Made by a program: the position numbers and the translations under genes. From Macrostomum hystrix (Eukaryota; Animalia; Platyhelminthes): a DNA stretch of 64,000 nt. The DNA is taken from contig CATNEN010000031.1 in assembly GCA_950097015.1 (NCBI GenBank), positions 124,001 through 188,000 of the forward strand, written 5' to 3'. Below are positions 40,665-64,000 of this stretch, piece by piece (the first letter of the stretch is position 1; every line of letters starts with the position of its first letter). The notes under the pieces are model-generated. The model was given only the letters and a program-made list of their open reading frames with translations, was not told where the DNA came from and made no database searches.

Positions 40665-40921
40665 TGTGGCGCCGTCGGTCCATCGCGGCCAGGCGCATTG
40701 ATAGCCTGAGCGTGGGCGGGCACGGTGCCGCCAATGTCCTTTAACTCTTCACTGACCTATTAATGTACATGCCTATTGTGTGGCACGTGGCCACCGCTCA
40801 ATAATATCGCACGTTGTACTTGTATCTCGCGTTCTATATAAGTGATGTGACTGATGCACAAATATATTATCGTAATCGCTCCAAACTAACAAACATAAGA
40901 GTCACTCTAAACGACACGACA
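40665..40921 (+). repeat. 3' LTR (257 bp)
   Basis: Preceded by PPT, followed by TSD GCCAT. Confidence 0.96.
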
Positions 40922-41290: not shown

Positions 41291-41417
41291 CTATGGTTTA
41301 TAATATTTTATTTACGAAATGAAAAAAATAAATTAAAATAATCTTCAATTACTACTGGCTGAAAATTAGTCTAAACGAGCTAAACTCCTCCTCCGGAGGA
41401 GGTTGAGGGGAGGGAAC

Positions 41418-42975
41418 TCCCATCGCCTGATCTCCCATCGCGTCATCTCCTATCGCCTGATCTCCCATCGCGTCATCTCCTATCGCCTGATCTCCCATCG
41501 CCTGATCTCCCATCGCCTAATCTCCCATCGTCTCATCTCCCATCGCCTCATCTCCCATCGCCTCATCTCCCATCGCCTCATCTCCCATCGCCTCATCTCC
41601 CATCGCCTCATCTCCCATCGCCTCATCTCCCGTCGCCTGATCTCCCATCGCTTCATCTCCCATCGGCTCATCTCCCATCGCCTCATCTTCCATCACCTGA
41701 TCACCCATCACCTCATCTCCCATCGCCTAATCTCCCATCGCATCATCTCCCATCGTCTCATCTCCCATCGCCTCATCTCCTATCGCCTGATCTCCCATCG
41801 CCTAATCTCCCATCGCCTCATCTACCATCGCCTCATCTCCCGTCGCCACATCTCCTATCGCCTGATCTCCCATCGCCTCATTTCTCATTGCCTCATCTCC
41901 CGTCGCCACATCTCCCATCGCCTGATCTCCCATCGCCTGATCTCCCATCGCCTCATCTCCCATCGCCTGATCTTCCATCGCCTGATCTCCCATCGCCTGA
42001 TCTCCCATCGGCTCATCTCCCGTCGCCTGATCTCCCATCGCCTGATCTCCTATCGCCTGATCTCCCATCGCCTCATCTCCTATCGCCTGATCTCCCATCG
42101 CCTGATCTCCCATCGCCTCATCTCCCATCGGCTCATCTCCCGTCGCCTGATCTCCCATCGCCTGATCACCCATCACCTCATCTCCCATCGCCTAATCTCC
42201 CATCGCATCATCTCCCATCGTCTTATCTCCCATCGCCTCATCTCCTATCGCCTGATCTCCCATCGCCTAATCTCCCATCGCCTCATCTCCCATCGCCTCA
42301 TCTCCCGTCGCCACATCTCCCGTCGCCACATCTCCTATCGCCTGATCTCCTATCGCCTGATCTCCCATCGCCTCATCTCCTATCGCCTGATCTCCCATCG
42401 CCTGATCTCCCATCGCCTCATCTCCCATCGGCTCATCTCCCGTCGCCTGATCTCCCATCGCCTGATCACCCATCACCTCATCTCCCATCGCCTAATCTCC
42501 CATCGCATCATCTCCCATCGTCTCATCTCCCATCGCCTCATCTCCTATCGCCTGATCTCCCATCGCCTAATCTCCCATCGCCTCATCTCCCATCGCCTCA
42601 TCTCCCGTCGCCACATCTCCCGTCGCCACATCTCCTATCGCCTGATCTCCCATCGCCTCATTTCTCATTGCCTCATCTCCCGTCGCCACATCTCCCATCG
42701 CCTGATCTCCCATCGCCTCATCTCCCATCGCCTGATCTTCCATCGCCTGATCTCCCATCGCCTGATCTCCCATCGGCTCATCTCCCGTCGCCTGATCTCC
42801 CATCGCCTGATCTCCCATCGCCTGATCTCCTATCGCCTGATCTCCCATCGCCTCATCTCCTATCGCCTGATCTCCCATCGCCTGATCTCCCATCGCCTCA
42901 TCTCCCATCGGCTCATCTCCCGTCGCCTGATCTCCCATTGCCTGATCTCCCATTGCCTGATCTCAAATCGCCTCA
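41418..42975. repeat. 15-bp satellite ATCTCCCATCGCCT(C/G/A) in unit B1
   Basis: Read directly; ends approximate. Confidence 0.95.
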
Positions 42976-43629
42976 GTTCTTTTCAAATGTTAAAAGGCAA
43001 AATAATAATTCACAGTTGAAATTTCATTGCCTTTAGCGCAAAGGGCAGCCAGTTTTTTAGTAAGTACATTCTTCTCCGCCTACACTGAGAGGCCCGCAAA
43101 TTTTATCAATTGAATTTTAACCCAGCCAACTCTGCCCTGCCCATTGTACGCACTTCAATATTGAACAAATCAGACCCCTCAATAGAAATAACTCGCGGCA
43201 CCCTCTCTCCGCCAATACACAGGGACAGTTAGAATGTGCGTACGGCCAACTCTCCGCCCCATTTTCAAACCGACTGCCAACCCTCCACTGGAGAGAAAAT
43301 ACACTAAACAGATAGGCACAAAATGTTGACGCAACTCATTTAATCGAGGCCAATTTCATCACAGCGGGAAGGACATTTGCCTACTATATACTACTTAATA
43401 GCCTTTCTGCTTTTTTGAGGATCATAGAATTTGAAATTTCAGAATTAAAATAGCCTATAGCCTTCCTCGGAAAATTTCCCATTTTCCCATATAAGTTTCA
43501 ACGCTGAGTTGCCAGTATTCTAGGAGGAGATGTCGAACTGACACACACACAGACACACAGACAAACAACACGTGAAAATTAGTATATTTACGAGCTAAAC
43601 TCCTCCTCCGGAGGAGGTTGAGGGGAGAG

Positions 43630-44262
43630 AACTCCCATCGCCTGATCTCCCACCGTCTCATCTCCCATCGCCTCATCTCCCATCGCCTCATCTCCCATCG
43701 CGTCATCTCCTATCGCCTGATCTCCCATCGCCTCATCTCCCATCGCCTCATCTCCCATCGCCTCATCTCCCGTCGCCTAATCTCCCATCGCATCATCTCC
43801 CATCGCCTCATCTCCCATCCCCTCATCTCCCGTCGCCTGATCTCCCATCGCCTCATCTCCCATCGCCTGATCTCCTATCCCCTCATCTCCCATCGCATAA
43901 TCTCCCATCGCCTCATCTCCTATCGCCTCATCTTTCATCGCCTCATCTACCATCGCCTGATCTCCCATCGCCTGATCTCCCATCCCCTCATCTCCCGTCG
44001 CCTAATCTCCCATCGCCTGATCTCCCATCCCCTCATCTCCCGTCGCCTGATCTCCCATCGCCTCATCTCCCATCGCCTGATCTCCTATCCCCTCATCTCC
44101 CGTCGCCTGATCTCCCATCGCGTCATCTTTCATCGCCTCATCTCTCATCACCTCATCTCCCATCGCCTCATCTCCCATCGCCTCATCTCCCATCGCCTCA
44201 TCTCTCATCGCCTAAACTCCCATTGCCTCATCTTCCGTCGCCACATCTCCCATCGCCTCATC
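43630..44262. repeat. 15-bp satellite in unit B2
   Basis: Read directly; ends approximate. Confidence 0.95.
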
Positions 44263-45435
44263 TAACCAAAAACTCCTCACCCAATGATGTCTGAAAGTAG
44301 CAATGTGCGTAAACCGCCTTTTGTCCGACTAAACTGCTGAAAACAATTCAAAATTGACCAATTTTTATTTAGCTACCATGCCCAGAATCTTCAGAATTAA
44401 AATAGACGACAACTTTCGGATAAGATTGAGGGGCTAGAAATCATATCGCGCGAACTCCATCAACTTTAAATTAAACCCCACCCGTTAAAACAGGTGAAGT
44501 CCGAGCCATTAATATTGACGACAGCCAGTTCTCCGGGCCCCGCTCAGTCAGAGGTGCGAATTTCAATAAATAAAATTCAACAGCCCGCCTTCGAGAATAG
44601 GAATGTGTGAAACTGTATTGTGGCGAATTCTCTCTCCTTAGCAATCTCGCCGAGACACTGTACACTCAGCTGAAAGCATTGCAAAAGTATAAAAACTTTA
44701 TTTGCCCTTGGCATCCCCAATTTCGGAATTCAGCAATGAAATTTATATCTCTGGATTTAGAACTTCAAGTTCTCTCCAGCAGTACAAATGTTATCCACAA
44801 ATCTTAAAAAAGCAAAATAATATTCTCAGTTGAAATTTCTGCAAAAGGCAGCCAGTTTTTTATTAAGTACATTCTTCTCCACCTACACTGAGAGGCCCGC
44901 AAATTTTATCAATTGAATTTTAACCCAGCCAACTCTGCCCTGCCCATTGTACGCACTTCAATATTGAACAAATCAGACCCCTCAATAGAACTGACTAACG
45001 GCACCCTCTCTCCGCCAATACACAGAGGCAGTTAGAATGTGCGTACGGCCACCTCTCCGCCCCATTTTTTTCAAACCGACTGCCAACCCTCCACTGGAGA
45101 GAAAATACACTAAACAGATAGGCACAAAATGTTGACGCAACTCATTTAACCGAGGCCAATTTCATCACAGCGGGAAGGACATTTGCCTACTATATACTAC
45201 TTAATAGCCTTTCTGCTTTTTTGAGGATCATAGAATTTGAAATTTCAGAATTAAAATAGCCTATAGCCTTCCTCGGAAAATTTCCCATTTTCCCATATAA
45301 GTTTCAACGCTGAGTTGCCAGTATTCTAGGAGGAGATGTCGAACTGACACACACACACACAGACAGACAAACAACACGTGAAAATTAGTATATTTACGAG
45401 CTAAACTCCTCCTCCGGAGGAGGTTGAGGGGAGAG

Positions 45436-47220
45436 AACTCCCATCGCCTGATCTCCAATCGCCTGATCTTCCCCCGCCTGATCTCCCACCGTCTCATCTC
45501 CCATCGCCTCATCTCCCATCGCCTAATCTCCCATCGCCTAATCTCCCATCGCCTGATCTCCCATTGCCTGATCTCCCATCGCCTCATCTCCCATCGCCTA
45601 ATCTCCCATCGGCTGATCTCCCATCGGCTGATCTCCCATCGCCTCATCTCCAATCGCCTGATCTCCCATCGCCTAATCTCCCATCGCCTCATCTCCCATC
45701 GCCTAATCTCCCATCGCCTAATCTCCCATCGCCTCATCTCCCATCGCCTCATCTTCCATCACCTGATCACCCATCACCTCATCTCCCATCGCCTAATCTC
45801 CCATCGCATCATCTCCCATCGTCTCATCTCCCATCGCCTCATCTCCTATCGCCTAATCTCCCATCGCCTCATCTCCCATCGCCTCATCTCCCATCGCCTC
45901 ATCTCACATCGCCTGATCTCCCATCGCCTCATCTCCCATCGCCTAATCTCCCATCGCCTAATCTCCCATCGCCTGATCTCCCATTGCCTGATCTCCCATC
46001 GCCTCATCTCCCATCGCCTAATCTCCCATCGGCTGATCTCCCATCGGCTGATCTCCCATCGCCTCATCTCCAATCGCCTGATCTCCCATCGCCTAATCTC
46101 CCATCGCCTCATCTCCCATCGCCTAATCTCCCATCGCCTAATCTCCCATCGCCTCATCTCCCATTGCCTGATCTCCCATCGCCTCATCTCCCATCGCCTA
46201 ATCTCCCATCGGCTGATCTCCCATCGGCTGATCTCCCATCGCCTCATCTCCAATCGCCTGATCTCCCATCGCCTAATCTCCCATCGCCTCATCTCCCATC
46301 GCCTAATCTCCCATCGCCTAATCTCCCATCGCCTCATCTCCCATCGCCTCATCTTCCATCACCTGATCACCCATCACCTCATCTCCCATCGCCTAATCTC
46401 CCATCGCATCATCTCCCATCGTCTCATCTCCCATCGCCTCATCTCCTATCGCCTAATCTCCCATCGCCTCATCTCCCATCGCCTCATCTCCCATCGCCTC
46501 ATCTCACATCGCCTGATCTCCCATCGCCTCATCTCCCATCGCCTAATCTCCCATCGCCTAATCTCCCATCGCCTGATCTCCCATTGCCTGATCTCCCATC
46601 GCCTCATCTCCCATCGCCTAATCTCCCATCGGCTGATCTCCCATCGGCTGATCTCCCATCGCCTCATCTCCAATCGCCTGATCTCCCATCGCCTAATCTC
46701 CCATCGCCTCATCTCCCATCGCCTAATCTCCCATCGCCTAATCTCCCATCGCCTCATCTCCCATCGCCTCATCTTCCATCACCTGATCACCCATCACCTC
46801 ATCTCCCATCGCCTAATCTCCCATCGCCTCATCTCCCATCGCCTCATCTCCCATCGCCTCATCTCCCATCGCCTGATCTCCCATCGCCTGATCTCCCATC
46901 GCCTGATCTCCCATAGCCTCATCTCCCATCGGCTCATCTCCCGTCGCCTGATCTCCCATCGCCTGATCTCCTATCGCCTGATCTCCTATCGCCTGATCTC
47001 CCATCGCCTAATCTCCCATCGCCTCATCTCCCATCGCCTGATCTCCCATCGCCTGATCTCCCATCGCCTGATCTCCCATCGGCTCATCTCCCGTTGCCTG
47101 ATCTCCCATCGCCTGATCTCCCATCGCCTGATCTCCCATCGCCTCATCTCCGATCGCCTGATCTCCCATCGCCTGATCTCCCATTGCCTGATCTCCCATT
47201 GCCTGATCTCAAATCGCCTC
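45436..47220. repeat. 15-bp satellite in unit B3
   Basis: Read directly; ends approximate. Confidence 0.95.
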
Positions 47221-47878
47221 AGTTCTTTTCAAATGTTACAAAGCAAAATAATAATTCACAGTTGAAATTTCATTGCCTTTAGCGCAAAGGGCAGCCAGTT
47301 TTTTAGTAAGTACATTCTTCTCCGCCTACACTGAGAGGCCCGCAAATTAAAAAATTATATTTTAACCCAGCCAACTCTGCCCTGCCCATTGTACGCACTT
47401 CAATATTGAACAAATCAGACCCCTCAATAGAACTGACTAACGGCACCCTCTCTCCGCCAATACACAGAGGCAGTTAGAATGTGCGTACGGCCACCTCTCC
47501 GCCCCATTTTTTTTCAAACCGACTGCCAACCCTCCACTGGAGAGAAAATACACTAAACAGATAGGCACAAAATGTTGACGCAACTCATTTAACCGAGGCC
47601 AATTTCATCACAGCGGGAAGGACATTTGCCTACTATATACTACTTAATAGCCTTTCTGCTTTTTTGAGGATCATAGAATTTGAAATTTCAGAATTAAAAT
47701 AGCCTATAGCCTTCCTCGGAAAATTTCCCATTTTCCCATATAAGTTTCAACGCTGAGTTGCCAGTATTCTAGGAGGAGATGTCGAACTGACACACAGACA
47801 CACAGACAGACAAACAACACGTGAAAATTAGTATATTTACGAGCTAAACTCCTCCTCCGGAGGAGGTTGAGGGGAGAG

Positions 47879-48271
47879 AACTCCCATCGCCTGATCTCCA
47901 ATCGCCTGATCTTCCCCCGCCTGATCTCCCACCGTCTCATCTCCCATCGCCTCATCTCCCATCGCCTAATCTCCCATCGCCTAATCTCCCATCGCCTGAT
48001 CTCCCATTGCCTGATCTCCCATCGCCTCATCTCCCATCGCCTAATCTCCCATCGGCTGATCTCCCATCGGCTGATCTCCCATCGCCTCATCTCCCATCGC
48101 CTGATCTCCTATCCCCTCATCTCCCGTCGCCTGATCTCCCATCGCCTCATCTTTCATCGCCTCATCTCCCATCGCCTCATCTCCCATCGCCTCATCTCCC
48201 ATCGCCTTATCTCTCATCGCCTAAACTCCCATTGCCTCATCTCCCGTCGCCACATCTCCCATCGCCTCATC
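47879..48271. repeat. 15-bp satellite in unit B4
   Basis: Read directly; ends approximate. Confidence 0.95.
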
Positions 48272-49444
48272 TAACCAAAAACTCCTCACCCAATGATGTC
48301 TGAAAGTAGCAATGTGCGTAAACCGCCTTTTGTCCGACTAAACTGCTGAAAACAATTCAAAATTGACCAATTTTTATTTAGCTACCATGCCCAGAATCTT
48401 CAGAATTAAAATAGACGACAACTTTCGGATAAGATTGAGGGGCTAGAAATCATATCGCGCGAACTCCATCAACTTTAAATTAAACCCCACCCGTTAAAAC
48501 AGGTGAAGTCCGAGCCATTAATATTGACGACAGCCAGTTCTCCGGGCCCCGCTCAGTCAGAGGTGCGAATTTCAATAAATAAAATTCAACAGCCCGCCTT
48601 CGAGAATAGGAATGTGTGAAACTGTATTGTGGCGAATTCTCTCTCCTTAGCAATCTCGCCGAGACACTGTACACTCAGCTGAAAGCATTGCAAAAGTATA
48701 AAAACTTTATTTGCCCTTGGCATCCCCAATTTCGGAATTCAGCAATGAAATTTATATCTCTGGATTTAGAACTTCAAGTTCTCTCCAGCAGTACAAATGT
48801 TATCCACAAATCTTAAAAAAGCAAAATAATATTCTCAGTTGAAATTTCTGCAAAAGGCAGCCAGTTTTTTATTAAGTACATTCTTCTCCACCTACACTGA
48901 GAGGCCCGCAAATTTTATCAATTGAATTTTAACCCAGCCAACTCTGCCCTGCCCATTGTACGCACTTCAATATTGAACAAATCAGACCCCTCAATAGAAC
49001 TGACTAACGGCACCCTCTCTCCGCCAATACACAGAGGCAGTTAGAATGTGCGTACGGCCACCTCTCCGCCCCATTTTTTTCAAACCGACTGCCAACCCTC
49101 CACTGGAGAGAAAATACACTAAACAGATAGGCACAAAATGTTGACGCAACTCATTTAACCGAGGCCAATTTCATCACAGCGGGAAGGACATTTGCCTACT
49201 ATATACTACTTAATAGCCTTTCTGCTTTTTTGAGGATCATAGAATTTGAAATTTCAGAATTAAAATAGCCTATAGCCTTCCTCGGAAAATTTCCCATTTT
49301 CCCATATAAGTTTCAACGCTGAGTTGCCAGTATTCTAGGAGGAGATGTCGAACTGACACACACACACACAGACAGACAAACAACACGTGAAAATTAGTAT
49401 ATTTACGAGCTAAACTCCTCCTCCGGAGGAGGTTGAGGGGAGAG

Positions 49445-51229
49445 AACTCCCATCGCCTGATCTCCAATCGCCTGATCTTCCCCCGCCTGATCTCCCACCG
49501 TCTCATCTCCCATCGCCTCATCTCCCATCGCCTAATCTCCCATCGCCTAATCTCCCATCGCCTGATCTCCCATTGCCTGATCTCCCATCGCCTCATCTCC
49601 CATCGCCTAATCTCCCATCGGCTGATCTCCCATCGGCTGATCTCCCATCGCCTCATCTCCAATCGCCTGATCTCCCATCGCCTAATCTCCCATCGCCTCA
49701 TCTCCCATCGCCTAATCTCCCATCGCCTAATCTCCCATCGCCTCATCTCCCATCGCCTCATCTTCCATCACCTGATCACCCATCACCTCATCTCCCATCG
49801 CCTAATCTCCCATCGCATCATCTCCCATCGTCTCATCTCCCATCGCCTCATCTCCTATCGCCTAATCTCCCATCGCCTCATCTCCCATCGCCTCATCTCC
49901 CATCGCCTCATCTCACATCGCCTGATCTCCCATCGCCTCATCTCCCATCGCCTAATCTCCCATCGCCTAATCTCCCATCGCCTGATCTCCCATTGCCTGA
50001 TCTCCCATCGCCTCATCTCCCATCGCCTAATCTCCCATCGGCTGATCTCCCATCGGCTGATCTCCCATCGCCTCATCTCCAATCGCCTGATCTCCCATCG
50101 CCTAATCTCCCATCGCCTCATCTCCCATCGCCTAATCTCCCATCGCCTAATCTCCCATCGCCTCATCTCCCATTGCCTGATCTCCCATCGCCTCATCTCC
50201 CATCGCCTAATCTCCCATCGGCTGATCTCCCATCGGCTGATCTCCCATCGCCTCATCTCCAATCGCCTGATCTCCCATCGCCTAATCTCCCATCGCCTCA
50301 TCTCCCATCGCCTAATCTCCCATCGCCTAATCTCCCATCGCCTCATCTCCCATCGCCTCATCTTCCATCACCTGATCACCCATCACCTCATCTCCCATCG
50401 CCTAATCTCCCATCGCATCATCTCCCATCGTCTCATCTCCCATCGCCTCATCTCCTATCGCCTAATCTCCCATCGCCTCATCTCCCATCGCCTCATCTCC
50501 CATCGCCTCATCTCACATCGCCTGATCTCCCATCGCCTCATCTCCCATCGCCTAATCTCCCATCGCCTAATCTCCCATCGCCTGATCTCCCATTGCCTGA
50601 TCTCCCATCGCCTCATCTCCCATCGCCTAATCTCCCATCGGCTGATCTCCCATCGGCTGATCTCCCATCGCCTCATCTCCAATCGCCTGATCTCCCATCG
50701 CCTAATCTCCCATCGCCTCATCTCCCATCGCCTAATCTCCCATCGCCTAATCTCCCATCGCCTCATCTCCCATCGCCTCATCTTCCATCACCTGATCACC
50801 CATCACCTCATCTCCCATCGCCTAATCTCCCATCGCCTCATCTCCCATCGCCTCATCTCCCATCGCCTCATCTCCCATCGCCTGATCTCCCATCGCCTGA
50901 TCTCCCATCGCCTGATCTCCCATAGCCTCATCTCCCATCGGCTCATCTCCCGTCGCCTGATCTCCCATCGCCTGATCTCCTATCGCCTGATCTCCTATCG
51001 CCTGATCTCCCATCGCCTAATCTCCCATCGCCTCATCTCCCATCGCCTGATCTCCCATCGCCTGATCTCCCATCGCCTGATCTCCCATCGGCTCATCTCC
51101 CGTTGCCTGATCTCCCATCGCCTGATCTCCCATCGCCTGATCTCCCATCGCCTCATCTCCGATCGCCTGATCTCCCATCGCCTGATCTCCCATTGCCTGA
51201 TCTCCCATTGCCTGATCTCAAATCGCCTC
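49445..51229. repeat. 15-bp satellite in unit B5 (copy of B3 at +4009 bp)
   Basis: ORF translations identical to B3 at an offset of 4009. Confidence 0.95.
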
Positions 51230-51887
51230 AGTTCTTTTCAAATGTTACAAAGCAAAATAATAATTCACAGTTGAAATTTCATTGCCTTTAGCGCAAAGGG
51301 CAGCCAGTTTTTTAGTAAGTACATTCTTCTCCGCCTACACTGAGAGGCCCGCAAATTAAAAAATTATATTTTAACCCAGCCAACTCTGCCCTGCCCATTG
51401 TACGCACTTCAATATTGAACAAATCAGACCCCTCAATAGAACTGACTAACGGCACCCTCTCTCCGCCAATACACAGAGGCAGTTAGAATGTGCGTACGGC
51501 CACCTCTCCGCCCCATTTTTTTTCAAACCGACTGCCAACCCTCCACTGGAGAGAAAATACACTAAACAGATAGGCACAAAATGTTGACGCAACTCATTTA
51601 ACCGAGGCCAATTTCATCACAGCGGGAAGGACATTTGCCTACTATATACTACTTAATAGCCTTTCTGCTTTTTTGAGGATCATAGAATTTGAAATTTCAG
51701 AATTAAAATAGCCTATAGCCTTCCTCGGAAAATTTCCCATTTTCCCATATAAGTTTCAACGCTGAGTTGCCAGTATTCTAGGAGGAGATGTCGAACTGAC
51801 ACACAGACACACAGACAGACAAACAACACGTGAAAATTAGTATATTTACGAGCTAAACTCCTCCTCCGGAGGAGGTTGAGGGGAGAG

Positions 51888-53702
51888 AACTCCCATCGCC
51901 TGATCTCCAATCGCCTGATCTTCCCCCGCCTGATCTCCCACCGTCTCATCTCCCATCGCCTCATCTCCCATCGCCTAATCTCCCATCGCCTAATCTCCCA
52001 TCGCCTGATCTCCCATTGCCTGATCTCCCATCGCCTCATCTCCCATCGCCTAATCTCCCATCGGCTGATCTCCCATCGGCTGATCTCCCATCGCCTCATC
52101 TCCAATCGCCTGATCTCCCATCGCCTAATCTCCCATCGCCTCATCTCCCATCGCCTAATCTCCCATCGCCTAATCTCCCATCGCCTCATCTCCCATCGCC
52201 TCATCTTCCATCACCTGATCACCCATCACCTCATCTCCCATCGCCTAATCTCCCATCGCATCATCTCCCATCGTCTCATCTCCCATCGCCTCATCTCCTA
52301 TCGCCTAATCTCCCATCGCCTCATCTCCCATCGCCTCATCTCCCATCGCCTCATCTCACATCGCCTGATCTCCCATCGCCTCATCTCCCATCGCCTAATC
52401 TCCCATCGCCTAATCTCCCATCGCCTGATCTCCCATTGCCTGATCTCCCATCGCCTCATCTCCCATCGCCTAATCTCCCATCGGCTGATCTCCCATCGGC
52501 TGATCTCCCATCGCCTCATCTCCCATCGCCTAATCTCCCATCGCCTAATCTCCCATCGCCTCATCTCCCATTGCCTGATCTCCCATCGCCTCATCTCCCA
52601 TCGCCTAATCTCCCATCGGCTGATCTCCCATCGGCTGATCTCCCATCGCCTCATCTCCAATCGCCTGATCTCCCATCGCCTAATCTCCCATCGCCTCATC
52701 TCCCATCGCCTAATCTCCCATCGCCTAATCTCCCATCGCCTCATCTCCCATCGCCTCATCTTCCATCACCTGATCACCCATCACCTCATCTCCCATCGCC
52801 TAATCTCCCATCGCATCATCTCCCATCGTCTCATCTCCCATCGCCTCATCTCCTATCGCCTAATCTCCCATCGCCTCATCTCCCATCGCCTCATCTCCCA
52901 TCGCCTCATCTCACATCGCCTGATCTCCCATCGCCTCATCTCCTATCGCCTAATCTCCCATCGCCTGATCTCCCATTGCCTGATCTCCCATCGCCTCATC
53001 TCCCATCGCCTAATCTCCCATCGGCTGATCTCCCATCGGCTGATCTCCCATCGCCTCATCTCCAATCGCCTGATCTCCCATCGCCTAATCTCCCATCGCC
53101 TCATCTCCCATCGCCTAATCTCCCATCGCCTAATCTCCCATCGCCTCATCTCCCATCGCCTCATCTTCCATCACCTGATCACCCATCACCTCATCTCCCA
53201 TCGCCTAATCTCCCATCGCATCATCTCCCATCGTCTCATCTCCCATCGCCTCATCTCCTATCGCCTAATCTCCCATCGCCTCATCTCCCATCGCCTCATC
53301 TCCCATCGCCTCATCTCACATCGCCTGATCTCCCATCGCCTCATCTCCCATCGCCTAATCTCCCATCGCCTCATCTCCCATCGCCTCATCTCCCATCGCC
53401 TAATCTCCCATCGGCTGATCTCCCATCGCCTCATTTCTCATTGCCTCATCTCCCGTCGCCACATCTCCCATCGCCTGATCTCCCATCGCCTCATCTCCAA
53501 TCGCCTAATCTCCCATCGCCTGATCTCCCATTGCCTGATCTCCCATCGGCTCATCTCCCGTCGCCTGATCTCCCATCGCCTGATCTCCCATCGCCTGATC
53601 TCCTATCGCCTGATCTCCCATCGCCTCATCTCCTATCGCCTGATCTCCCATCGCCTGATCTCCCATTGCCTGATCTCGCATTGCCTGATCTCAAATCGCC
53701 TC
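51888..53702. repeat. 15-bp satellite in unit B6
   Basis: Read directly; ends approximate. Confidence 0.95.
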
Positions 53703-54933
53703 AGTTCTTTTCAAATGTTAAAAAGCAAAATAATAATTCACAGTTGAAATTTCATTGCCTTTAGTGCAGAGGGCAGCCAGTTTTTTAGTAAGTACATTCT
53801 TCTCCGCCTACACTGAGAGGCCCGCAAATTAAAAAATTATATTTTAACCCAGCCAACTCTGCCCTGCCCATTGTACGCACTTCAATATTGAACAAATCAG
53901 ACCCCTCAATAGAACTGACTAACGGCACCCTCTCTCCGCCAATACACAGAGGCAGTTAGAATGTGCGTACGGCCACCTCTCCGCCCCATTTTTTTTCAAA
54001 CCGACTGCCAACCCTCCACTGGAGAGAAAATACACTAAACAGATAGGCACAAAATGTTGACGCAACTCATTTAACCGAGGCCAATTTCATCACAGCGGGA
54101 AGGACATTTGCCTACTATATACTACTTAATAGCCTTTCTGCTTTTTTGAGGATCATAGAATTTGAAATTTCAGAATTAAAATAGCCTATAGCCTTCCTCG
54201 GAAAATTTCCCATTTTCCCATATAAGTTTCAACGCTGAGTTGCCAGTATTCTAGGAGGAGATGTCGAACTGACACACAGACACACAGACAGACAAACAAC
54301 ACGTGAAAATTAGTATATTTAGATTCTCAGTTGAAATTTCTGCAAAAGGCAGCCAGTTTAGTAAGCACATTCTTCTCCGCCTACACTGAGAGGCCCGCAA
54401 TTTTATCAATTGAATTTTAACCCAGCCAACTCTGCCCTGCCCATTGTACGCACTTCAATATTGAACAAATCAGACCCCTCAATAGAACTGACTAACGGCA
54501 CCCTCTCTCCGCCAATACACAGGGACAGTTAGAATGTGCGTACGGCCAACTCTCCGCCCCATTTTCAAACCGACTGCCAACCCTCCACTGGAGAGAAAAT
54601 ACACTAAACAGATAGGCACAAAATGTTGACGCAACTCATTTAACCGAGGCCAATTTCATCACAGCGGGAAGGACATTTGCCTACTATATACTACTTAATA
54701 GCCTTTCTGCTTTTTTGAGGATCATAGAATTTGAAATTTCAGAATTAAAATAGCCTATAGCCTTCCTCGGAAAATTTCCCATTTTCCCATATAAGTTTCA
54801 ACGCTGAGTTGCCAGTATTCTAGGAGGAGATGTCGAACTGACACACAGACACACACACACACAGACAAACAACACGTGAAAATTAGTATATTTACGAGCT
54901 AAACTCCTCCTCCGGAGGAGGTTGAGAGGAGAG

Positions 54934-57003
54934 AACTCCCATCGCCTGATCTCCCATCGCGTCATCTCCTATCGCCTGATCTCCCATCGCCTCATCTCCC
55001 GTCGCCTGATCTCCCATCGCCTCATCTCCCATCACCTGATCACCCATCACCTCATCTCCCATCGCCTAATCTCCCATCGCATCATCTCCCATCGTCTCAT
55101 CTCCCATCGCCTCATCTCCTATCGCCTGATCTCCCATCGCCTAATCTCCCATCGCCTCATCTCCCATCGCCTCATCTCCCATCGCCTGATCTCCCATCGC
55201 CTCATCTCCCGTCGCCACATCTCCTATCGCCTGATCTCCCATCGCCTCATTTCTCATTGCCTCATCTCCCGTCGCCACATCTCCCATCGCCTGATCTCCC
55301 ATCGCCTGATCTCCCATCGCCTCATCTCCCATCGCCTGATCTCCCATCGCCTAATCTCCCATCGCATCATCTCCCATCGTCTCATCTCCCATCGCCTCAT
55401 CTCCTATCGCCTGATCTCCCATCGCCTAATCTCCCATCGCCTCATCTCCCATCGCCTCATCTCCCATCGCCTGATCTCCCATCGCCTCATCTCCCGTCGC
55501 CACATCTCCTATCGCCTGATCTCCCATCGCCTCATTTCTCATTGCCTCATCTCCCGTCGCCACATCTCCCATCGCCTGATCTCCCATCGCCTGATCTCCC
55601 ATCGCCTCATCTCCCATCGCCTGATCTCCCATCGCCTGATCTCCCATCGCCTGATCTCCCATCGCCTCATCTCCCATCGCCTCATCTCCCATCGCTTCAT
55701 CTCCCATCGCCTCATCTCCCATCGCCTCATCTTCCATCACCTGATCACCCATCACCTCATCTCCCATCGCCTAATCTCTCATCGCATCATCTCCCATCGC
55801 CTAATCTCCCATCGCCTCATCTCCCATCGCCTCATCTCCCATCGCCTGATCTCCCATCGCCTCATCTCCCGTCGCCACATCTCCTATCGCCTGATCTCCC
55901 ATCGCCTCATTTCTCATTGCCTCATCTCCCGTCGCCACATCTCCCATCGCCTGATCTCCCATCGCCTCATCTCCCATCGCCTGATCTCCCATCGCCTGAT
56001 CTCCCATCGCCTGATCTCCCATCGCCTCATCTCCCGTCGCCACATCTCCTATCGCCTGATCTCCCATCGCCTCATTTCTCATTGCCTCATCTCCCGTCGC
56101 CACATCTCCCATCGCCTGATCTCCCATCGCCTGATCTCCCATCGCCTCATCTCCCATCGCCTGATCTCCCATCGCCTAATCTCCCATCGCATCATCTCCC
56201 ATCGTCTCATCTCCCATCGCCTCATCTCCTATCGCCTGATCTCCCATCGCCTAATCTCCCATCGCCTCATCTCCCATCGCCTCATCTCCCATCGCCTGAT
56301 CTCCCATCGCCTCATCTCCCGTCGCCACATCTCCTATCGCCTGATCTCCCATCGCCTCATTTCTCATTGCCTCATCTCCCGTCGCCACATCTCCCATCGC
56401 CTGATCTCCCATCGCCTGATCTCCCATCGCCTCATCTCCCATCGCCTGATCTCCCATCGCCTGATCTCCCATCGCCTGATCTCCCATCGCCTCATCTCCC
56501 ATCGCCTCATCTCCCATCGCTTCATCTCCCATCGCCTCATCTCCCATCGCCTCATCTTCCATCACCTGATCACCCATCACCTCATCTCCCATCGCCTAAT
56601 CTCTCATCGCATCATCTCCCATCGCCTAATCTCCCATCGCCTCATCTCCCATCGCCTCATCTCCCATCGCCTGATCTCCCATCGCCTCATCTCCCGTCGC
56701 CACATCTCCTATCGCCTGATCTCCCATCGCCTCATTTCTCATTGCCTCATCTCCCGTCGCCACATCTCCCATCGCCTGATCTCCCATCGCCTGATCTCCC
56801 ATCGCCTCATCTCCCATCGCCTGATCTCCCATCGCCTGATCTCCCATCGCCTGATCTCCCATCGGCTCATCTCCCGTTGCCTGATCTCCCATCGCCTGAT
56901 CTCCCATCGCCTGATCTCCCATCGCCTCATCTCCGATCGCCTGATCTCCCATCGCCTGATCTCCCATTGCCTGATCTCCCATTGCCTGATCTCAAATCGC
57001 CTC
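54934..57003. repeat. 15-bp satellite in unit B7
   Basis: Read directly; ends approximate. Confidence 0.95.
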
Positions 57004-57565
57004 AGTTCTTTTCAAATGTTAAAAAGCAAAATAATAATTCACAGTTGAAATTTCATTGCCTTTAGCGCAAAGGGCAGCCAGTTTTTTAGTAAGTACATTC
57101 TTCTCCGCCTACACTGAGAGGCCCGCAAATTTTATCAATTGAATTTTAACCCAGCCAACTCTGCCCTGCCCATTGTACGCACTTCAATATTGAACAAATC
57201 AGACCCCTCAATAGAAATAACTCGCGGCACCCTCTCTCCGCCAATACACAGGGACAGTTAGAATGTGCGTACGGCCAACTCTCCGCCCCATTTTCAAACC
57301 GACTGCCAACCCTCCACTGGAGAGAAAATACACTAAACAGATAGGCACAAAATGTTGACGCAACTCATTTAATCGAGGCCAATTTCATCACAGCGGGAAG
57401 GACATTTGCCTACTATATACTACTTAATAGCCTTTCTGCTTTTTTGAGGATCATAGAATTTGAAATTTCAGAATTAAAATAGCCTATAGCCTGACCAGGA
57501 AAATTTCCCATTTTCCCATATAAGTTTCAAAGTTGACTTGTCAGTATTCTAGGAGGAGATAACCA

Positions 57566-57612
<47 letters not shown>

Positions 57613-58185
57613 ACACGTGAATTTTAGTATATTTAGAGAGAAGAGAGATGATTTGACGCAGTGCAGAATCGAACCCTAGCCTAGCCTAACTTATTCCTAG
57701 TGCCTACACATCGGCTATTCCGACTGTTGGTTAGTGGGTGCAGAAATCAGCCTTATAAAATGAATTCTCAAAGTTCTGGCTTTGTACAATGAAGTAAGAA
57801 AATAAAGTACACTCAGTCTCGCGGTTGGTTGTGTACATTTATTTCCAATTTGTCTCCAGAGTGCAGGCTTCAAATTCAATCAGCTAGGGGTTGTTGCGCA
57901 ATTTGACGATGCAATTCTAATTCAGTGGCAGTGAGTAAAATTCTCAATAGGCCAAGATGGTTTGACCTTTGAAAAATATTTAAAATGTTTTTCGAATATT
58001 TAATCCCTTTAGCAATAAAGTTAAGCTTAATAAAAATACGTGTAAAATTATCAGTTGACTATAATGTCCCCATATTTGGCATCTTTTGGTGAAGAAATGG
58101 TGAAAATCGGTTGAGCCGTTTTTTCTAAAATCAATCGCCTACCTAGATAGATAGATAGATAGATACATCTCATTTTTAGTATATA

Positions 58186-59846
58186 CGAGCGGAATTCCTC
58201 CTCCGGAGGAAGTTAGGGGAGAGAACTCCCATTGCCTCATCTCCCGTCGCCAAATCTCGCATCGCCTGATCTCCCATCGCCTCATCTCCCGTCGCCTCAT
58301 CTCCCATCGCCTCATCTCCCATCGCCTCATCTCTCATTGCCTCATCTCCCATCGCCTCATCTCCCATCGCCTGATCTCCCATCGCCTGATCTCCCATCGC
58401 CTCATCTCCCGTCGCCTGATCTCCCATCGCCTAATCTCCCATCGCCTCATCTCCCGTCGCCTGATCTCTCATCGCCTGATCTCCCATCGCCTCATCTCCC
58501 ATCGCCTCATCTCCTATCGCCTGATCTCCCATCGCCTAATCTCCCATCGCCTCATCTCCCATCGCCTCGTCTCCCATCGCCTCATCTCCCATCGCCTGAT
58601 CTCCTATCCCCTCATCTCCCGTCGCCTGATCTCCCATCGCCTCATCTTTCATCGCCTCATCTCCCATCGCCTCATCTCCCATCGCCTCATCTCCCATCGC
58701 CTTATCTCTCATCGCCTAAACTCCCATTGCCTCATCTCCCGTCGCCACATCTCCCATCGCCTCATCTAACCAAAAACTCCTCACCCAATGATGTCTGAAA
58801 GTAGCAATGTGCGTAAACCGCCTTTTGTCCGACTAAACTGTTGAAAACAATTCAAAATTGACCAATTTTTCTTTAGCTACCATGCCCAGAATCTTCAGAA
58901 TTAAAATAGACGACAACTTTCGGATAAGATTGAGGGGCTAGAAATCATATCGCGCGAACTCCATCAACTTTAAATTAAACCCCACCCGTTAAAACAGGTG
59001 AAGTCCGAGCCATTAATATTGACGACAGCCAGTTCTCCGGGCCCCGCTCAGTCAGAGGTGCGAATTTCAATAAATAAAATTCAACAGCCCGCCTTCGAGA
59101 ATAGGAATGTGTGAAACTGTATTGTGGCGAATTCTCTCTCCTTAGCAATCTCGCCGAGACACTGTACACTCAGCTGAAAGCATTGCAAAATTATAAAAAC
59201 TTTATTTGCCCTTGGCATCCCCAATTTTCGGAATTCAGCAATGAAATTTATATCTCTGGATTTAGAACTTCAAGTTCTCTCCAGCAGTACAAATTTTATC
59301 CACAAATCTAAAAAAAGCAAAATAATAATTCTCAGTTGAAATTTCTGCAAAGGGCAGCCAGTTTAGTAAGCACATTCTTCTCCGCCTACACTGAGAGGCC
59401 CGCTAATTTTATAAATTGAATTTTAACTCAGCCAACTCTGCCCTGCCCATTGTACGCACTTCAATATTGAACAAATCAGACCCCTCAATAGAACTGACTA
59501 ACGGCACCCTCTCTCCGCCAATACACAGAGGCAGTTAGACTGTGCGTACGGCCACCTCTCCGCCGTATTTTTTTTCAAACCGACTGCCAACCCTCCACTG
59601 GAGAGAAAATACACTAAACAGATAGGCACAAAATGTTGACGCAACTCATTTAACCGAGGCCAATTTCATCACAGCGGGAAGGACATTTGCCTACTATATA
59701 CTACTTAATAGCCTTTCTGCTTTTTTCAGGATCATAGAATTCGAAATTTCAGAATTAAAATAGCCTATAGCCTGACCAGGAAAATTTCCCATTTTCCCAT
59801 ATAAGTTTCAAAGTTGACTTGTCAGTATTCTAGGAGGAGATAACCA

Positions 59847-59881
<35 letters not shown>

Positions 59882-59904
59882 ACACGTGAATTTTAGTATA
59901 TTTA
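58186..59904 (-). mobile_element. Family B unit B8, joining the 5' end of A2 to the 3' end of the coding Helitron (15-bp array about 58225..58766)
   Basis: Same modules as B2/B4. Its 3' terminus CGAGCGGAATTCCTCCTCCGGAGGAAGTT is identical to that at 59905. Confidence 0.85.
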
Positions 59905-61179
59905 CGAGCGGAATTCCTCCTCCGGAGGAAGTTGAGGGGATAGAACTCCCATCGCCTGAATTCCATCCGTCAAATTCTAACTATGCAAAGAGAACTCCGT
60001 GCACTTTGAATCAGGTGAACTCAGAGTAGTCCATTTGAGGGCAGTTAGGTAGCCCCGGACCAGCTCTGTTTGTAAGCACATTCCTCTCTCCGCCAAGGCA
60101 GAGGTGCGATTTTCGATAATTAAAAATACTAAAAAGATTGAGCAGCCCGCCTCCTCACCGCCCCAGTCAGTGTGCGCCCATTTTTTATGCAATAATTGGT
60201 TTTTCGTACTCCAATATCGCTTTCCATGTGGAGCCTTGCGATGTCCCCTAAAATCCCTGCACCTCAGTCACCCGCTCACACTTTGCAATCTCCCCTGAGA
60301 ACTCTTATTCACCCCTCACCATTTCAAATATCTCCTAGGAAGAAATTCTTATTTGCTAAGTAAATTTTGTGTAAATGATTAAGGAAAGTCGGAAATGAAA
60401 AGTTATGAATTGAAATTTATTAGAAAAAGGCCTCAACACGTATAAATTTCTATATTTCCTGCCCTTCTGTGCCTCATTTCACGAAGCGAATATGCTCAGT
60501 TCTATGGTTTAAAAGGCGCTTTGACATTGTCGTAAATGCAGCTATTAAAGTTTAGTAATTAATTTAGAGATTTAGAATGATGATATAAGCTGTAAGAATC
60601 ATTGATTGAAGGAATTTTGTGAAGAGGCCTTTTGCATAATTGCTATTTCTATTTACATAGAAAAATTGTGAAGGATACATTATTTTAATTTAGTGACGCA
60701 GAAAAATTAAAAAGCATAATAAAATAGCAGTAGAACTATCGAGCTGGGATTTATATAGGAAGTGGAAATTATGAATGTATGAATTTACAAATTATGAATT
60801 TGTAGCAGCTAAATTTTAGTAATAATTTTGCATCGCTTAGTTCTACTGATATAAAATTTTGGCATATATTTACAACTGGGGAATGTATTTGTACGCATGA
60901 TAATAGAGGGCATCCTGAGAAAATGATTTGTAGAGAAAGGATAAAGTGAATTTCGACATGGCGTATGTAATTTTTGATGCCCTGAATTATCGAAGGGAAT
61001 ATTTGAGTGGGTGAAATACAAATGAATGAGTAATATACAATAAATGACAGATGGCATGCAAAATTCATGAGGCACCCGATCAGGTCAAGCACGATAAAAC
61101 ACTTGATCGGAGCTGCAGCTGGGCGCAAATCGGTCACAGCTTGGGCTTCAGCGACTCCCAAGAAGGCTGTCCAGGGGAC

Positions 61180-61345
61180 TCCGGCCGGTGGCGTCCTCAG
61201 CTGCCGGCGTGTCGACTCTCAGATCCCGGAGCAGCAACGGGTCATTGGGACAGCAGCAATGGGCGGGCTGATGGCACATTCAGCTCGGGTCGATGTTGAG
61301 AGGCCAGTCGCTGAAGTCCAGTTTGAGCAGCTCCGGCGGGAAGGA
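61180..61345 (-). pseudogene. Second, more decayed duplicate of the same helicase region (FPPELL....LLLRDLR...AEDATG)
   Basis: Matches FPPELLN...LLLRDLRDNVLLAEVATG at both ends, with a stop codon and divergence in between; GC-rich island in an AT-rich tail. Confidence 0.5.
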
Positions 61346-61760
61346 AAATGAGTGGAGACTTTAAAGCGCGGATCAAGTGTTCTAGGGCTATAAAAATGTA
61401 TGTTCATTAAAAAAAGCCATTAAAATGTGAGGCTTGATCGGGTGCAAACAAATTAATAGAAATTATTTAGATTTTATCAGTCTGGCCTGCAGCAGGGCGT
61501 TTGAGATGTTAATTTTAAGTTCAAATGTCATTATTTACATTGCATTTGAAGCAATATTTAGTCTTAAATTTTTAGTTTGAACGTGCAAATCATACCTAAA
61601 ATAGAAATGACATTATAGATATTTTACTTTTGGCTGAGCTGCAGCCCAGACTTATTAGTATTTACAAAGATGACAAATCCGGCAAAAGAAGGACACGAAC
61701 CCGGTCACTTCGGCGCGCTGCTTTGCCTGCGAGGGAGCTGTCGCAGGTCAGTGTTGCGCG

Positions 61761-61850
61761 CCGCGGGATGAAGGCCGACCGCCTTTGAAACTGGGCCGCA
61801 GCGACCACGGCGAGCAGTCCATTGTCCCGCAGATCTCGATGAAGTAACCG
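61761..61850 (-). pseudogene. Decayed duplicate of a helicase segment (LLHRDLRDNGLLAVVA...FIPR)
   Basis: Aligns by eye with 62236..62323 (LLLRDLRDNVLLAEVATG...FIPR) at both DNA and protein level. Confidence 0.65.
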
Positions 61851-61872
61851 GGCTTTATCGTCAGCGGCGATG

Positions 61873-64000
61873 TCAGAAGTTGCGTGCTAGGGTGAGAAAA
61901 TGAAGTCAAATTGAGTATGAAATTAAGTATAAAATATGTAGATTTTGATTGGTAAGAGATTTAACAATTCAACTTACCAATGAGCTGCCGCAGTACGATG
62001 TTCTGCGTCCGACCGCCTGGGGCGCGCACCTTGACGCCCGATGCACTTCGCGCACGACTCAGAGCCACGTAGAGCTGGCCGTGCTGAAAGCAGGCCGTCG
62101 TCAGGTCGACAGCGTAGGTGCTCAGCGACTGGCCCTGGCTCTTGTGGATGGTCATGGCGAAGCATGGCCGGATTGGAAACTGCAGGCGGCGGAACGTGAA
62201 GGGCAGCTCAGTAGGACTCGGCTCCTGTGGGATTCGCGGAATAAACACCTGCCGCCCACGGTAGATGCCAGTGGCGACCTCCGCGAGCAGCACATTGTCC
62301 CGCAGGTCTCGCAGCAGCAGCCGGGTTCCGTTGCACAGCAGCGGTGGGTCGAGGTTCCGCATCATCATGACCGGCATGCCGACCTTGAGCTCCAGCCGGT
62401 GATGCGGCAGGCCGTTGGGATCAAGTCGGTTCAGCAGCTCCGGTGGAAAATTGGTAGCTGCCACATCGTCGTTCGGAATCGAATCGACTGATAGATAAGC
62501 CCGACTGTCTCCAGGAAAGAGCGCCAGGCAGGCGGCGTTGGTCTCGTCTACCGTCCTGTTGAGCGGCGACAGAATGCTCCGCTCCGCGAACATCTGGTCA
62601 CGGTGCGGGCTTGGCTCGAACGACGGGTAGACGTGCCGGATGAGCTGCTCAGTGGTTGTGTCATCAGGCATGAGAATCTCGCTAGGCAGGGAAACCATGC
62701 CCTCTTCGTCCTCTGGCAGCTCTCCGTTGCCAACCTAATGGAATTGTGGAATAAAAAAGACATTTCAAGTTCCATAGAATTATTTATTTAATAGTGTCCG
62801 TAAGCATGCAGAAATGGATTAAGCAAAATATTGTAGTTATTCGGAAATTAGTTTTAGAAAGTAGATTATGAATGAAACGCATTAATTTAAAAGTTTATGC
62901 AAAATAGTGAAGGAATTATTTTCTCACCTGCATAAGAAAATCTGCGTAGCTTTTGGCATCAGAGTCGCTCTCGAGCCGCAGATTTCTTGTCAAATGGTGC
63001 TGCTGGAAATGTGGCCACAAAGCCGACTGAGTCAGGCAGGCGTCGATCGTGTTCGCCTGCGTTCCTCCGGGCACCACAGCCAGCAGCTGGCGGAAGTCGC
63101 CGGCTAGCACCAGCAGCGCTCCTCCGAACGGCTGCTCGACCCGCAGCAGATCTCGCAGAGACCGGTCCACGATCTCCAGGTCCTTGCGGTGCGTCATCGG
63201 TGCCTCGTCCCACACGATGATTCGCGCGTTCCGCAGAATCTCTGCGAGCTTGCTCCGCCTGCCGATGGAGCAGAAGGCATTGTCTTGCCGAACTGCGCAG
63301 ACGGGTATCTTGAACCTGGGCGGAGGGGATGATGATTCGGGGGTTGAACAGCATAGTGCAATATGAATGGATTAGGAAAAGGAGGCAGATAAAATATGCA
63401 AGCAAAAGCGCCAGCAAAGCAGCAGTAATAAAACAATACTTAGATAAAGAATTGCGGCTCACATTGAATGTGCGGTCCTGCCACCGGGAAGAATGGTCGC
63501 CGCAATTCCAGATGATGCCACGGCTACAGCAATCTGGCGCTTCGCTCGAGCAGAATTAAGCAGAAGCGTCAGCAAGAATGTCTTGCCCGTGCCGCCGGGA
63601 GCATCGATAAAGTGCAGGCCGCCACCGCCGGCCTGCATGCTGGACTGAATGGCGTCGAAGATCGCTCGCTGTTCGCCAGTCAGCGTGCCGATTTGCGCCG
63701 TGACTTCTGCCTGGAGCTCAACGGCTTCTTCGTTTGTCGGCAGGCAGTCAGTCAGTTGGTGAGTCTGGGAAAGTGAAAGGAAAGAAGTTAGTTATAGAAG
63801 ATATTTTTATATGAATTCAGCAATGAAAAGAGTAAATAAAGTAAATAATTGGAGTATTTCCAATTACATCAATAAGAAATGAAATGACAGAAATAATGCT
63901 CTCATAAGAATAAGCGCACTTGCCTGATCCGGCTCTGACCGTGGCTTAGGCAGGCCGTAGGCAGGCAGCTCGGATCCTCCCATGGTCTCCAGCAAGTTCT
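61873..64000 (-). CDS. Helitron RepHel C-terminal PIF1-family (SF1B) helicase, partial; exons (minus) >64000..63924, 63764..63463, 63315..62928, 62734..61978, probable last exon 61886..61873
   Basis: Manual splicing keeps one frame: FIDAPGGTGKT (Walker A), ASSGIAATILPGGRTAHSMFKIP, IIVWDEAPM (Walker B), GGALLVLAGDFRQLL, FPPELLN...LKVGMPVMMMRN...LCNGTR, RRLQFPIRPCFAMTIHKSQGQS, HGQLYVALSR. Introns are AT-rich with GT-AG ends, except the first, which needs a GC donor. The last exon is inferred from a GTAAGT donor; unspliced, the ORF stops at 61961. Confidence 0.92.

Follow-up and report, generated by a model that had tools for sequence, protein, structure and literature searches.

In Fusarium, the Helitron FoHeli1 carries multiple 5′ termini, up to five, that arise from self-insertion and have been interpreted as showing that the element is active (Chellapan et al. 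2016, PMC5148889; TR4 study 2026, PMC13342296); when the nick falls at the leftmost terminus, the whole stack can move to a new site (PMC5148889; PMC13342296). Other Helitrons form head-to-tail arrays with CTAG/TC joints (here a slash within a motif marks a joint or a cut), as in bats, maize, Arabidopsis and Bombyx; the usual explanation is rolling-circle concatemers or end bypass. Members of one Helentron or HINE family differ in how often a terminal mono- or dinucleotide is repeated (Thomas et al. 2014, PMC4067079). Finally, the single-strand HUH nuclease of IS608/IS200-IS605 elements chooses a target resembling its own left-end cleavage site.

Here we analyse a block of Helitrons (family B) in Macrostomum hystrix, within a 64,000-nucleotide (nt) stretch of DNA referred to as the window, which also holds a sister family (A) with CTAG/TC arrays. 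FoHeli1 is the closest precedent: there, as apparently here, new copies land in the same orientation in a resident's 5′ region, and the displaced 5′ piece stays upstream. Long pieces of this kind measure 571 nt in the window (54324-54894) and 221 nt and 1043 nt at other loci. In all, 5′ fragments of 62-1043 nt at four loci and runs of (TC)2-6 before 33 5′ ends constitute stacked 5′ termini in one orientation. FoHeli1 differs, however, in that it is of the Helitron2 type, has terminal inverted repeats and repeats about its first 73-85 nt, whereas B repeats only TC, with insertion placed 2 nt inside; moreover, inserted B copies persist as long trains, and their TCs can be balanced genome-wide. 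B arrays share with CTAG/TC arrays a common orientation, exact joints, mixed units and satellite-carrying non-autonomous elements, but the CTAG/TC arrays keep the TC. Helentrons and HINEs have T runs, T-rich targets and subterminal inverted repeats, and their terminal variation has no tie to tandem insertion (PMC4067079), unlike B, which is without such repeats and targets A/T. IS608/IS200-IS605 elements are prokaryotic and helicase-free, and recognize a fixed tetranucleotide that base-pairs with a guide in the element; in B, no guide was identified. The first-pass annotation of this DNA knew of no earlier account of such an insertion counter; we likewise found no description of dinucleotide piles in the literature, but self-insertion and the related multiple 5′ termini of Fusarium have been published.

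A Helitron family with a CTCG terminus

All evidence is comparative and comes from one 220-Mb assembly. Genome searches used exact patterns, and the reversed control pattern gave 0 matches in every search. On sequence grounds, B elements are non-autonomous partners of a canonical RepHel Helitron. Coding units of 8-10 kb with Rep (PF14214) and PIF1 have the same ends as the B family. One Rep domain lies at C31:189581-190096 (E = 3.5e-51) and shares its strand and unit with PIF1 pieces at window positions 61961-63215; in an 8-kb unit at another locus (L047), PF14214 precedes PIF1. The frames are split, and the open reading frames scanned in the 8-kb unit revealed no endonuclease family. The 3′ terminus departs from the canonical CTRR, reading CTCG in 126 copies with C instead of a purine at position 3; that of the A family in the same window is CTAG. 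A canonical Helitron has a 3′ palindrome of about 16-20 nt some 11 nt from its end, and B has CCTCCTCCGGAGGAGG, with a 7-bp stem, 9 nt from the end. An alternative 3′ parse (…TTAGC followed by TCG) was rejected because every host flank would need to begin with TCGT.

The target is A/T without a target-site duplication: the 3′ flank is T at 14 of 14 loci, and the 5′ flanking bases at 13 loci are A (6), T (3), C (3) and G (1). Classification as a Helentron was rejected, given this target and the lack of subterminal inverted repeats; Helentron/Helitron2 elements have a TT target, an endonuclease domain and subterminal or asymmetric terminal inverted repeats of 12-15 bp, and when the B ends were compared by eye for such repeats, only 5 nt (CTAAA and TTTAG) recurred inverted near the 3′ end. 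The TC is part of the element. Host-flanked 5′ ends read A/TC (8), T/TC (2) and C/TC, and the TC is absent from paralogous empty sites; a position outside the mobile unit is ruled out by host-flanked copies that carry TC in unrelated contexts.

Table 1. Features of the array and its surroundings, in window coordinates, listed 5′ to 3′ along the strand of the elements
Positions	Strand	Feature	Remarks
59905..64000	(-)	Coding Helitron, same family as B, ~10 kb, 3′ part	Pif1 helicase pieces; Rep domain and TC-less 5′ end outside window
58186..59904	(-)	B unit, variant 3′ end GGAATTCCGCTCG	Both junctions TC-less: coding Helitron above, A-like 5′ end (TATATAC) below
57649..58185	(-)	A-like Helitron hosting the block, 5′ part	Own TC absent at joint with CTCG end above
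57649..57666	(-)	5′ flank of insertion site, CTGCACTGCGTCAAATCA	Last base is target A; inside older A-like Helitron
57636..57648	(-)	TC pile, displaced 5′ dinucleotides	TCTCTCT TCTCTC: six TC and one extra T, 13 nt
54895..57635	(-)	Outermost B unit, 2741 nt	AAAAT/GTCT-microsatellite subfamily; 5′ region identical to outer unit of C14 array
54324..54894	(-)	5′ fragment of B unit, 571 nt	TC-less joint to unit above; complete unit follows
51849..54323	(-)	Complete B unit	Own TC kept (54323-54322), A before it
49406..51848	(-)	B unit, 2443 nt	5′ junction TC-less; 100% identical to 45397-47839
47840..49405	(-)	B unit, 1566 nt	5′ junction TC-less; first 620 nt match 43591-45396
45397..47839	(-)	B unit, 2443 nt	5′ junction TC-less; duplicate copy
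43591..45396	(-)	B unit, 1806 nt	5′ junction TC-less; in duplicated segment
41376..43590	(-)	3′-most B unit, 2215 nt, 3′ end ...CCTCCTCCGGAGGAGGAGTTTAGCTCG	Presumed founder of the block
41385..41401	(-)	3′ hairpin, 7-bp stem CCTCCTC with GAGGAGG	Stops 9 nt before CTCG 3′ end; sequence kept in 126 copies
41355..41375	(-)	3′ flank of insertion site, TTTAGACTAATTTTCAGCCAG	First base is target T; Helitron-5′-end-like (ACTAATTTTCA shared)

The outer 5′ end of the block reads tcaaatca/TCTCTCTTCTCTC/TAAATATAC, in which TCTCTCTTCTCTC is the TC stack that had been noted on first reading, lying at 57636-57648 between the outermost element and the host A. At this position the host element is uninterrupted in four other copies (CTGCACTGCGTCAAATCA/TTTAGACTAATTTTCAGCC; CAAATCA/TTTAGAC), with no pile and nothing else between the flanks. 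The 16.27-kb block, pile included, is therefore one insertion at a single A/T site, and the 13-nt pile arrived with the Helitrons; the same empty sites rule out a host (TC)n microsatellite. The window array contains about five independent units, against six TCs in the pile. Within the array, the 571-nt fragment is a second 5′ terminus.

Loss and retention of the terminal TC

On the minus strand of the window, CTCG/TAAATATAC junctions stand at 43590/1, 45396/7, 47839/40, 49405/6, 51848/9, 54894/5 and 59904/5, and a CTCG/TATATAC junction at 58185/6. Window 5′ ends with TC occur at 54323 (gagaa/TC TAAATATAC), 11294 (acatt/TC TAATATAC) and 17972 (CTAG/TC TAATATAC). The first-pass annotation took every CTCG-type junction to be TC-less, which holds for all eight in the window but not genome-wide, where 67 CTCG junctions are without TC, about 12-14 have one TC and at least 7 have two or more; for own-family 5′ ends after CTCG, this amounts to 67 TC-less against about 20 with TC. 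CTCG ends are also joined TC-less to 5′ ends of other families (TATATAC, TAATATAC, TACTATAC and TGATATAC). After CTAG, by contrast, TC is kept at 283 of 301 junctions (all 100 matches listed of the 283 are CTAG) and absent from 18, in agreement with the initial observation, made at 17972/3, that canonical tandems retain it. The TC-less share is thus about three quarters for CTCG junctions versus about 6% for CTAG junctions. Across the junctions compared, register goes with the family of the upstream 3′ end.

Balance of TCs and relatedness of units

Genome-wide, 134 family 5′ ends were found, of which 67 read CTCG/TAAAT and about 62 have TC; three read A/TAAAT without it. TC runs reach at least two repeats in 33 of the 134, at least three in 15, at least four in 7, at least five in 4 and six in 2. 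The 67 missing TCs are matched by 61 extra TCs in contiguous runs, or about 70 when T-interrupted runs are included, and the 11 arrays scored have 37 missing and 39 extra (arrays on C31 beyond the window, C34, C38 and C39 being scored from the coordinates and matched strings of exact patterns only). Missing and extra TCs are in rough balance across the genome. In 11 of 11 arrays, the pile at the outer 5′ end is the largest, as in the nine units near 30.97 Mb of C38, whose TC counts of 5, 1, 0, 0, 1, 0, 0, 2 and 0 sum to 9. Together, this balance and the placement of piles at outer ends favour insertion over replication slippage as the origin of the stacks.

Outer pile size correlates with unit number (rho 0.82), the relationship that the first-pass annotation had proposed to tabulate. 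Array outer ends carry 2-6 TCs and the seven solo copies 1, 1, 1, 1, 2, 2 and 2 (arrays versus solos, p = 0.0009). None of these solos therefore has the long TC run that would have told against the original reading, although its expectation of a single TC is borne out in only four; the other three carry (TC)2. One of the three, at C29:5189763, has its 3′ end next to the TC-less A-like 5′ end of another family, so its (TC)2 is what self-insertion would predict. The remaining two would be accounted for only if a copy can take its pile along when it moves. As a tally of insertions the TC count is approximate and noisy: the sum minus the unit number ranges from -3 to +3 (C14, -3; C15, -2; C25a, +2; C38 near 17.76 Mb, +3). 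Piles also contain a stray T, TA or G (TCTCTCT TCTCTC; TCTATCTCTC; ...CTCG TCG TC), irregularities not expected under the simple model.

These counts bear on an alternative in which TC-less new copies, generated by a donor 5′ nick two bases inside the element, are added 3′ of a resident at CTCG/T while the outer (TC)n grows by microsatellite slippage. Such addition would likewise produce CTCG/TAAAT junctions, and the stray T and TA in piles suggest that the transposase can nick 5′ of different Ts. It predicts, however, that missing and extra TCs are unlinked, contrary to the balance at both scales, and it sits poorly with the absence of long TC runs from solos. Apart from the three A/TAAAT ends, no TC-less host-flanked copy was found, and TC loss tracks the upstream 3′ family even before elements whose own junctions keep TC. 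We consider this alternative unlikely.

In alignments of the first 600-620 nt, the nearest relative lay at another locus for 42 of 55 units, which implies that arrays grow by separate insertions and not by local copying. Within arrays, units of two interleaved subfamilies diverge by 1-9% in the 5′ region, and host flanks differ between arrays; private substitutions (0-5 per unit) are too few to order the units by age. Some local copying did occur. As suspected from the outset, part of the window array is a later duplication, of 4 kb, in which 47839 to 45397 and 51848 to 49406 are 100% identical over 2443 bp and the units starting at 45396 and 49405 are identical over their first 620 nt; the C14 array has one near-identical adjacent pair. 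Both cases would suit a model in which TC-less junctions arose ancestrally, once or a few times, and were then multiplied by unequal crossing-over, segmental duplication or co-mobilization of dimers and trimers through 3′-end bypass, a known Helitron behaviour (PMC5148889), with the TC run again a product of slippage. Yet only 1 of 37 adjacent pairs recurs, the window's own duplication, and B ends are joined TC-less to at least four other 5′-end types; together with the relationships, interleaving and varied flanks above, this makes spread from one or a few junctions quite improbable. We give almost no credence to the usual literature explanation of tandem Helitron arrays, rolling-circle concatemers from one failed-termination event with an imprecise end-to-end joint, which expects identical siblings rather than two subfamilies differing by 1-9%, should retain TC at the circle junction and produces no pile.

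A proposed self-insertion mechanism

We therefore return to self-insertion. It is likely that new B copies repeatedly insert between the TC and TAAAT of residents, building both the trains and the TC piles; from the sequence comparisons we infer the act of insertion, the position of the cut and the reason for the 2-nt register. The transposase would cut its target 5′ of a T that has a TATA(C/A)-type motif a few bases downstream. A resident Helitron, beginning TC/TAAATATAC, would offer such a target at its own start, with the cut between TC and TAAAT; the incoming 3′ end would be joined straight to TAAAT, leaving a TC-less junction, and the resident's TC would be shoved ahead of the newcomer's own. 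Each hit would turn a 5′ end with k TCs into an outer end with k + 1 and an inner end with 0, so that TCs are conserved and drift 5′-ward. If hits recur and the outermost copy is favoured several-fold, trains and (TC)2-6 piles would result, and junctions with one, two or more TCs would be traces of hits on inner copies. A 5′ nick at the outermost TC could carry the pile to a new site, and unequal recombination may later add or remove units. In simulations, equal targeting and outermost-only targeting both missed the data, whereas a 3-6-fold outermost bias fitted the mean pile (4.09) and the TC-less share of inner junctions (0.755). The initial proposal of insertion at TC/TAAAT of the outermost copy thus keeps its register, but inner copies appear to be targets too.

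A stronger version, in which the transposase homes to resident 5′ termini and cuts targets exactly two bases downstream of its donor cut, the offset being a property of the enzyme, is one we put forward tentatively; the offset is seen at about 75% of CTCG-family junctions, against about 6% in the CTAG family. If such a fixed offset were true, TC piles would be a literal molecular tally that tells how many insertions built a train and in which order. They would also serve as a natural record, at nucleotide resolution, of the way a eukaryotic HUH transposase places donor versus target DNA.

Debate over Helitron target choice and the origin of trains still relies mainly on rolling-circle concatemer models. 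In this genome, trains consist of separately transposed copies, and a conserved two-base footprint would mark each landing point, turning the notion that Helitrons like sitting beside Helitrons into a rule testable at single-base resolution. The TC count may serve as a simple marker of recent self-insertion activity, and the contrast between the CTCG and CTAG sister families could be used to map the determinant of cleavage register. Self-insertion would also explain how satellite-carrying Helitrons form blocks tens of kilobases long that resemble satellite DNA.

Missing and stacked TCs in the B array

The window (C31:124001-188000) lies in a 220-Mb eukaryotic assembly of 42 contigs (G000; C numbers denote its contigs and L numbers individual loci) and is almost entirely a minus-strand train of satellite-carrying Helitron-like elements. 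One block consists only of the B family, Helitrons with a 3′ CTCG, and its host is an older A-like Helitron; the A family, a sister of B, ends in CTAG. On the minus strand a B unit opens with TC and TAAATATACTAA(TTTT/AAAT)CACGTG, continues through a microsatellite of GT or GTCT repeats, ~550 nt of unique sequence and a 15-bp minisatellite whose length varies, and closes with the palindrome CCTCCTCCGGAGGAGG followed by the 3′ end AGTTTAGCTCG. Units of 8–10 kb that share the B ends encode Helitron_like_N and PIF1. The family agrees with canonical Helitrons in most features, the exception being CTCG in place of the expected CTRR, and no Helentron features were found on reading its two ends and in the ORFs scanned.

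The first-pass annotation had noted that TC is missing where B 3′ ends meet 5′ ends and is stacked at the outer 5′ end of the block. All of its coordinates proved correct on re-reading of the window sequence: CTCG|TAAATATAC is found at the six TC-less junctions of the block, TC is also missing at two junctions outside it (58185/6 and 59904/5), the 5′ ends 54323, 11294 and 17972 retain TC, and the run TCTCTCTTCTCTC separates an A from the outermost TAAAT. Part of the array is, as suggested, a later duplication: unit 51848→49406 shows 100% identity to unit 47839→45397 across 2443 bp, and the units next after them also match each other.

Features of the window and related loci (unprefixed coordinates are window positions)
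Position	Feature	Remarks
225-2880	P-element/THAP9-like transposase	split over two frames
5138-6136	SSXT-domain ORF
6881-10783	23-bp and 18-bp satellites	same pair as next row
18998-36628	23-bp satellite array	17.6 kb, 765 copies, inside A-type Helitrons; 18-bp satellite adjoins
36778-40744	Ty3/gypsy-type retrotransposon pol	protease, RT, RNase H, integrase; breaks up 23-bp satellite
41376-57648	B block	minus strand
57649-57666 / 41355-41375	CAAATCA|TTTAGACTAATTTTCA in A-like element	target of B train
59905-64000	3′ part of a Helitron_like_N/PIF1 coding element
L047 3381-4928	515-aa ORF, no Pfam match	between Rep and helicase parts of 8-kb coding Helitron
54324-54894; L048 (C25b) 6027-5807; merged C12 8067-9109; G000:C38:31221517-31221578	5′ fragment directly before a complete unit	no matching remainder downstream; lengths in text, same order
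L036 (C7b) ~2040-2054; merged C12 18238-18243; G000:C31:206752-206756	G-interrupted piles	...CTCTCTCG TCG TC TAAAT; CTCG|TCGAC TAAAATATAC
G000:C7:1486003, 6332337, 6333960	A|TAAATATAC	three B 5′ ends; neither TC nor CTCG in front; two are 1.6 kb apart
L035 (C7:9853000-9862999) 7282, 9326, 9706; L046 5497, 4821	CTAG|TAATATAC and CTAG|TATATAC	piles TC-T-TC-T-TC, TC-T-TC, TC-TA-TC
G000:C2, e.g. 2602074-2603480, 7191125-7192809	long runs of CTAG|TC TAATATAC junctions	330-345 bp spacing; coordinates only

TC counts in arrays and genome-wide

The proposal was that new copies insert between the TC and TAAAT of the outermost copy. Put as a rule for any copy that is hit, an insertion would convert k TCs at its 5′ end into the pair [k+1, 0]. 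We read 13 loci in full and scored four more large arrays from pattern coordinates only. The outer 5′ end holds the largest pile in every array (11/11), the size of this outer pile correlates with the number of tandem units (rho 0.82), in keeping with the proposal, and arrays differ from solos, single B copies outside arrays (p = 0.0009). The accompanying expectation that solos have one TC held for four of seven, the other three having two (1,1,1,1,2,2,2). A ‘solo’ with (TC)2 at C29:5189763 adjoins a TC-less A-like 5′ end, which is the exact prediction of the model. Summed over all 11 arrays, missing TCs number 37 and extra ones 39, a tally that is approximate because units have been duplicated, because piles can move along with copies (the unusual run TCTATCTCTC is present at both the C1 outer end and a C38 junction) and because stray T, TA or G lie within piles. 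The G-interrupted piles look like leftover 3′-terminal letters.

TCs per 5′ end, outer end first, then inward
Array	TC counts
C38 ~30.97 Mb	[5,1,0,0,1,0,0,2,0]
C12	[6,0,1,0,(TCGAC),1,2,0,0]
C15	[4,0,0,0,0,1,0]
C14	[2,0,0,1,0,0]
C25a	[6,0,0,0]
C38 ~17.76 Mb	[5,0,4,0,0,0]
C39	[4,0,1,0]
C25b	[2,0,1,0]
C1	[3,0]
C8	[2,0]
Window	[6,0,0,0,0,0,0]

Genome-wide, the B 5′ end has 134 exact matches to its 20-mer. Among these occurrences, 67 directly follow CTCG with no TC, 24 have a single TC preceded by a base other than C (14 after G, 8 after A and 2 after T) and five directly follow A or T; the genome-wide pattern search found none after a C not belonging to TC. At least two TCs precede 33 ends, at least three 15, at least four 7, at least five 4, and six 2. 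By these counts the 67 missing TCs are roughly matched by the extra ones, which number 61 in contiguous runs and ~70 with T-interrupted runs included.

The [k+1, 0] rule was simulated in three targeting versions. Equal targeting of all copies gave a mean outer pile of 3.04 and a TC-less share of inner junctions of 0.61, targeting of the outermost copy only gave 5.45 and 1.0, and the observed values are 4.09 and 0.755; a 3–6-fold preference for the outermost copy fits both.

Insertion site and origin of the arrays

Four other copies of the host element (at C7b, C8, C14 and window 10878) have uninterrupted CTGCACTGCGTCAAATCA|TTTAGACTAATTTTCAGCC, and the 16.27-kb block, pile included, was therefore inserted at a single A|T. 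On this sequence comparison, the pile is not host DNA. In the two-unit C8 array, TCTC is likewise extra relative to homologous A-like sequence in the window (compared by eye). The insertion site resembles a Helitron start, with ACTAATTTTCA common to both. In the C14 copy (L042-L043, minus strand, merged-locus position 3027) a different Helitron (TCATCCTATATACTAAAATTC...) sits at the identical base; the site has been struck twice, independently.

TC-less junctions could also arise if units were joined as concatemers, duplicated locally or mobilised together as dimers. When 55 units were aligned over their first 600 nt, the nearest relative of 42 lay only at a different locus; just one of 37 adjacent pairs recurs, namely the window’s own duplication; and both B subfamilies are interleaved inside arrays. 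Dimer co-mobilisation, local duplication and concatemers are therefore excluded as the main junction source. The arrays appear instead to have been assembled through separate insertions, and the evidence for the insertion model comes from comparison within one assembly.

Precedents and the junction register

Tandem Helitron arrays are already well known, and in Fusarium self-insertion of FoHeli1 near 5′ ends yields ‘multiple 5′ termini’ (PMC5148889, PMC13342296), chimeras that the 571-, 221-, 1043- and 62-nt 5′ fragments found here resemble. The earlier statement that no such insertion counter had been described thus stands for the 2-nt register and dinucleotide piles, of which our literature search found no description, but not for the related self-insertion.

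The C2 mini-Helitrons, arranged end-to-start, behave like a ~340-bp satellite. The CTAG family displays the same phenomenon as B at low frequency (L035 and L046): CTAG junctions number 283 with TC (all CTAG among the first 100, the rows listed) versus 18 without, and the rare TC-less ones are found in mini-Helitron arrays that also bear piles such as TC-T-TC-T-TC. CTCG ends meet 5′ ends of their own family without TC, and do the same with those of other families (TATATAC, TAATATAC, TACTATAC and TGATATAC). The junction register follows the incoming family.
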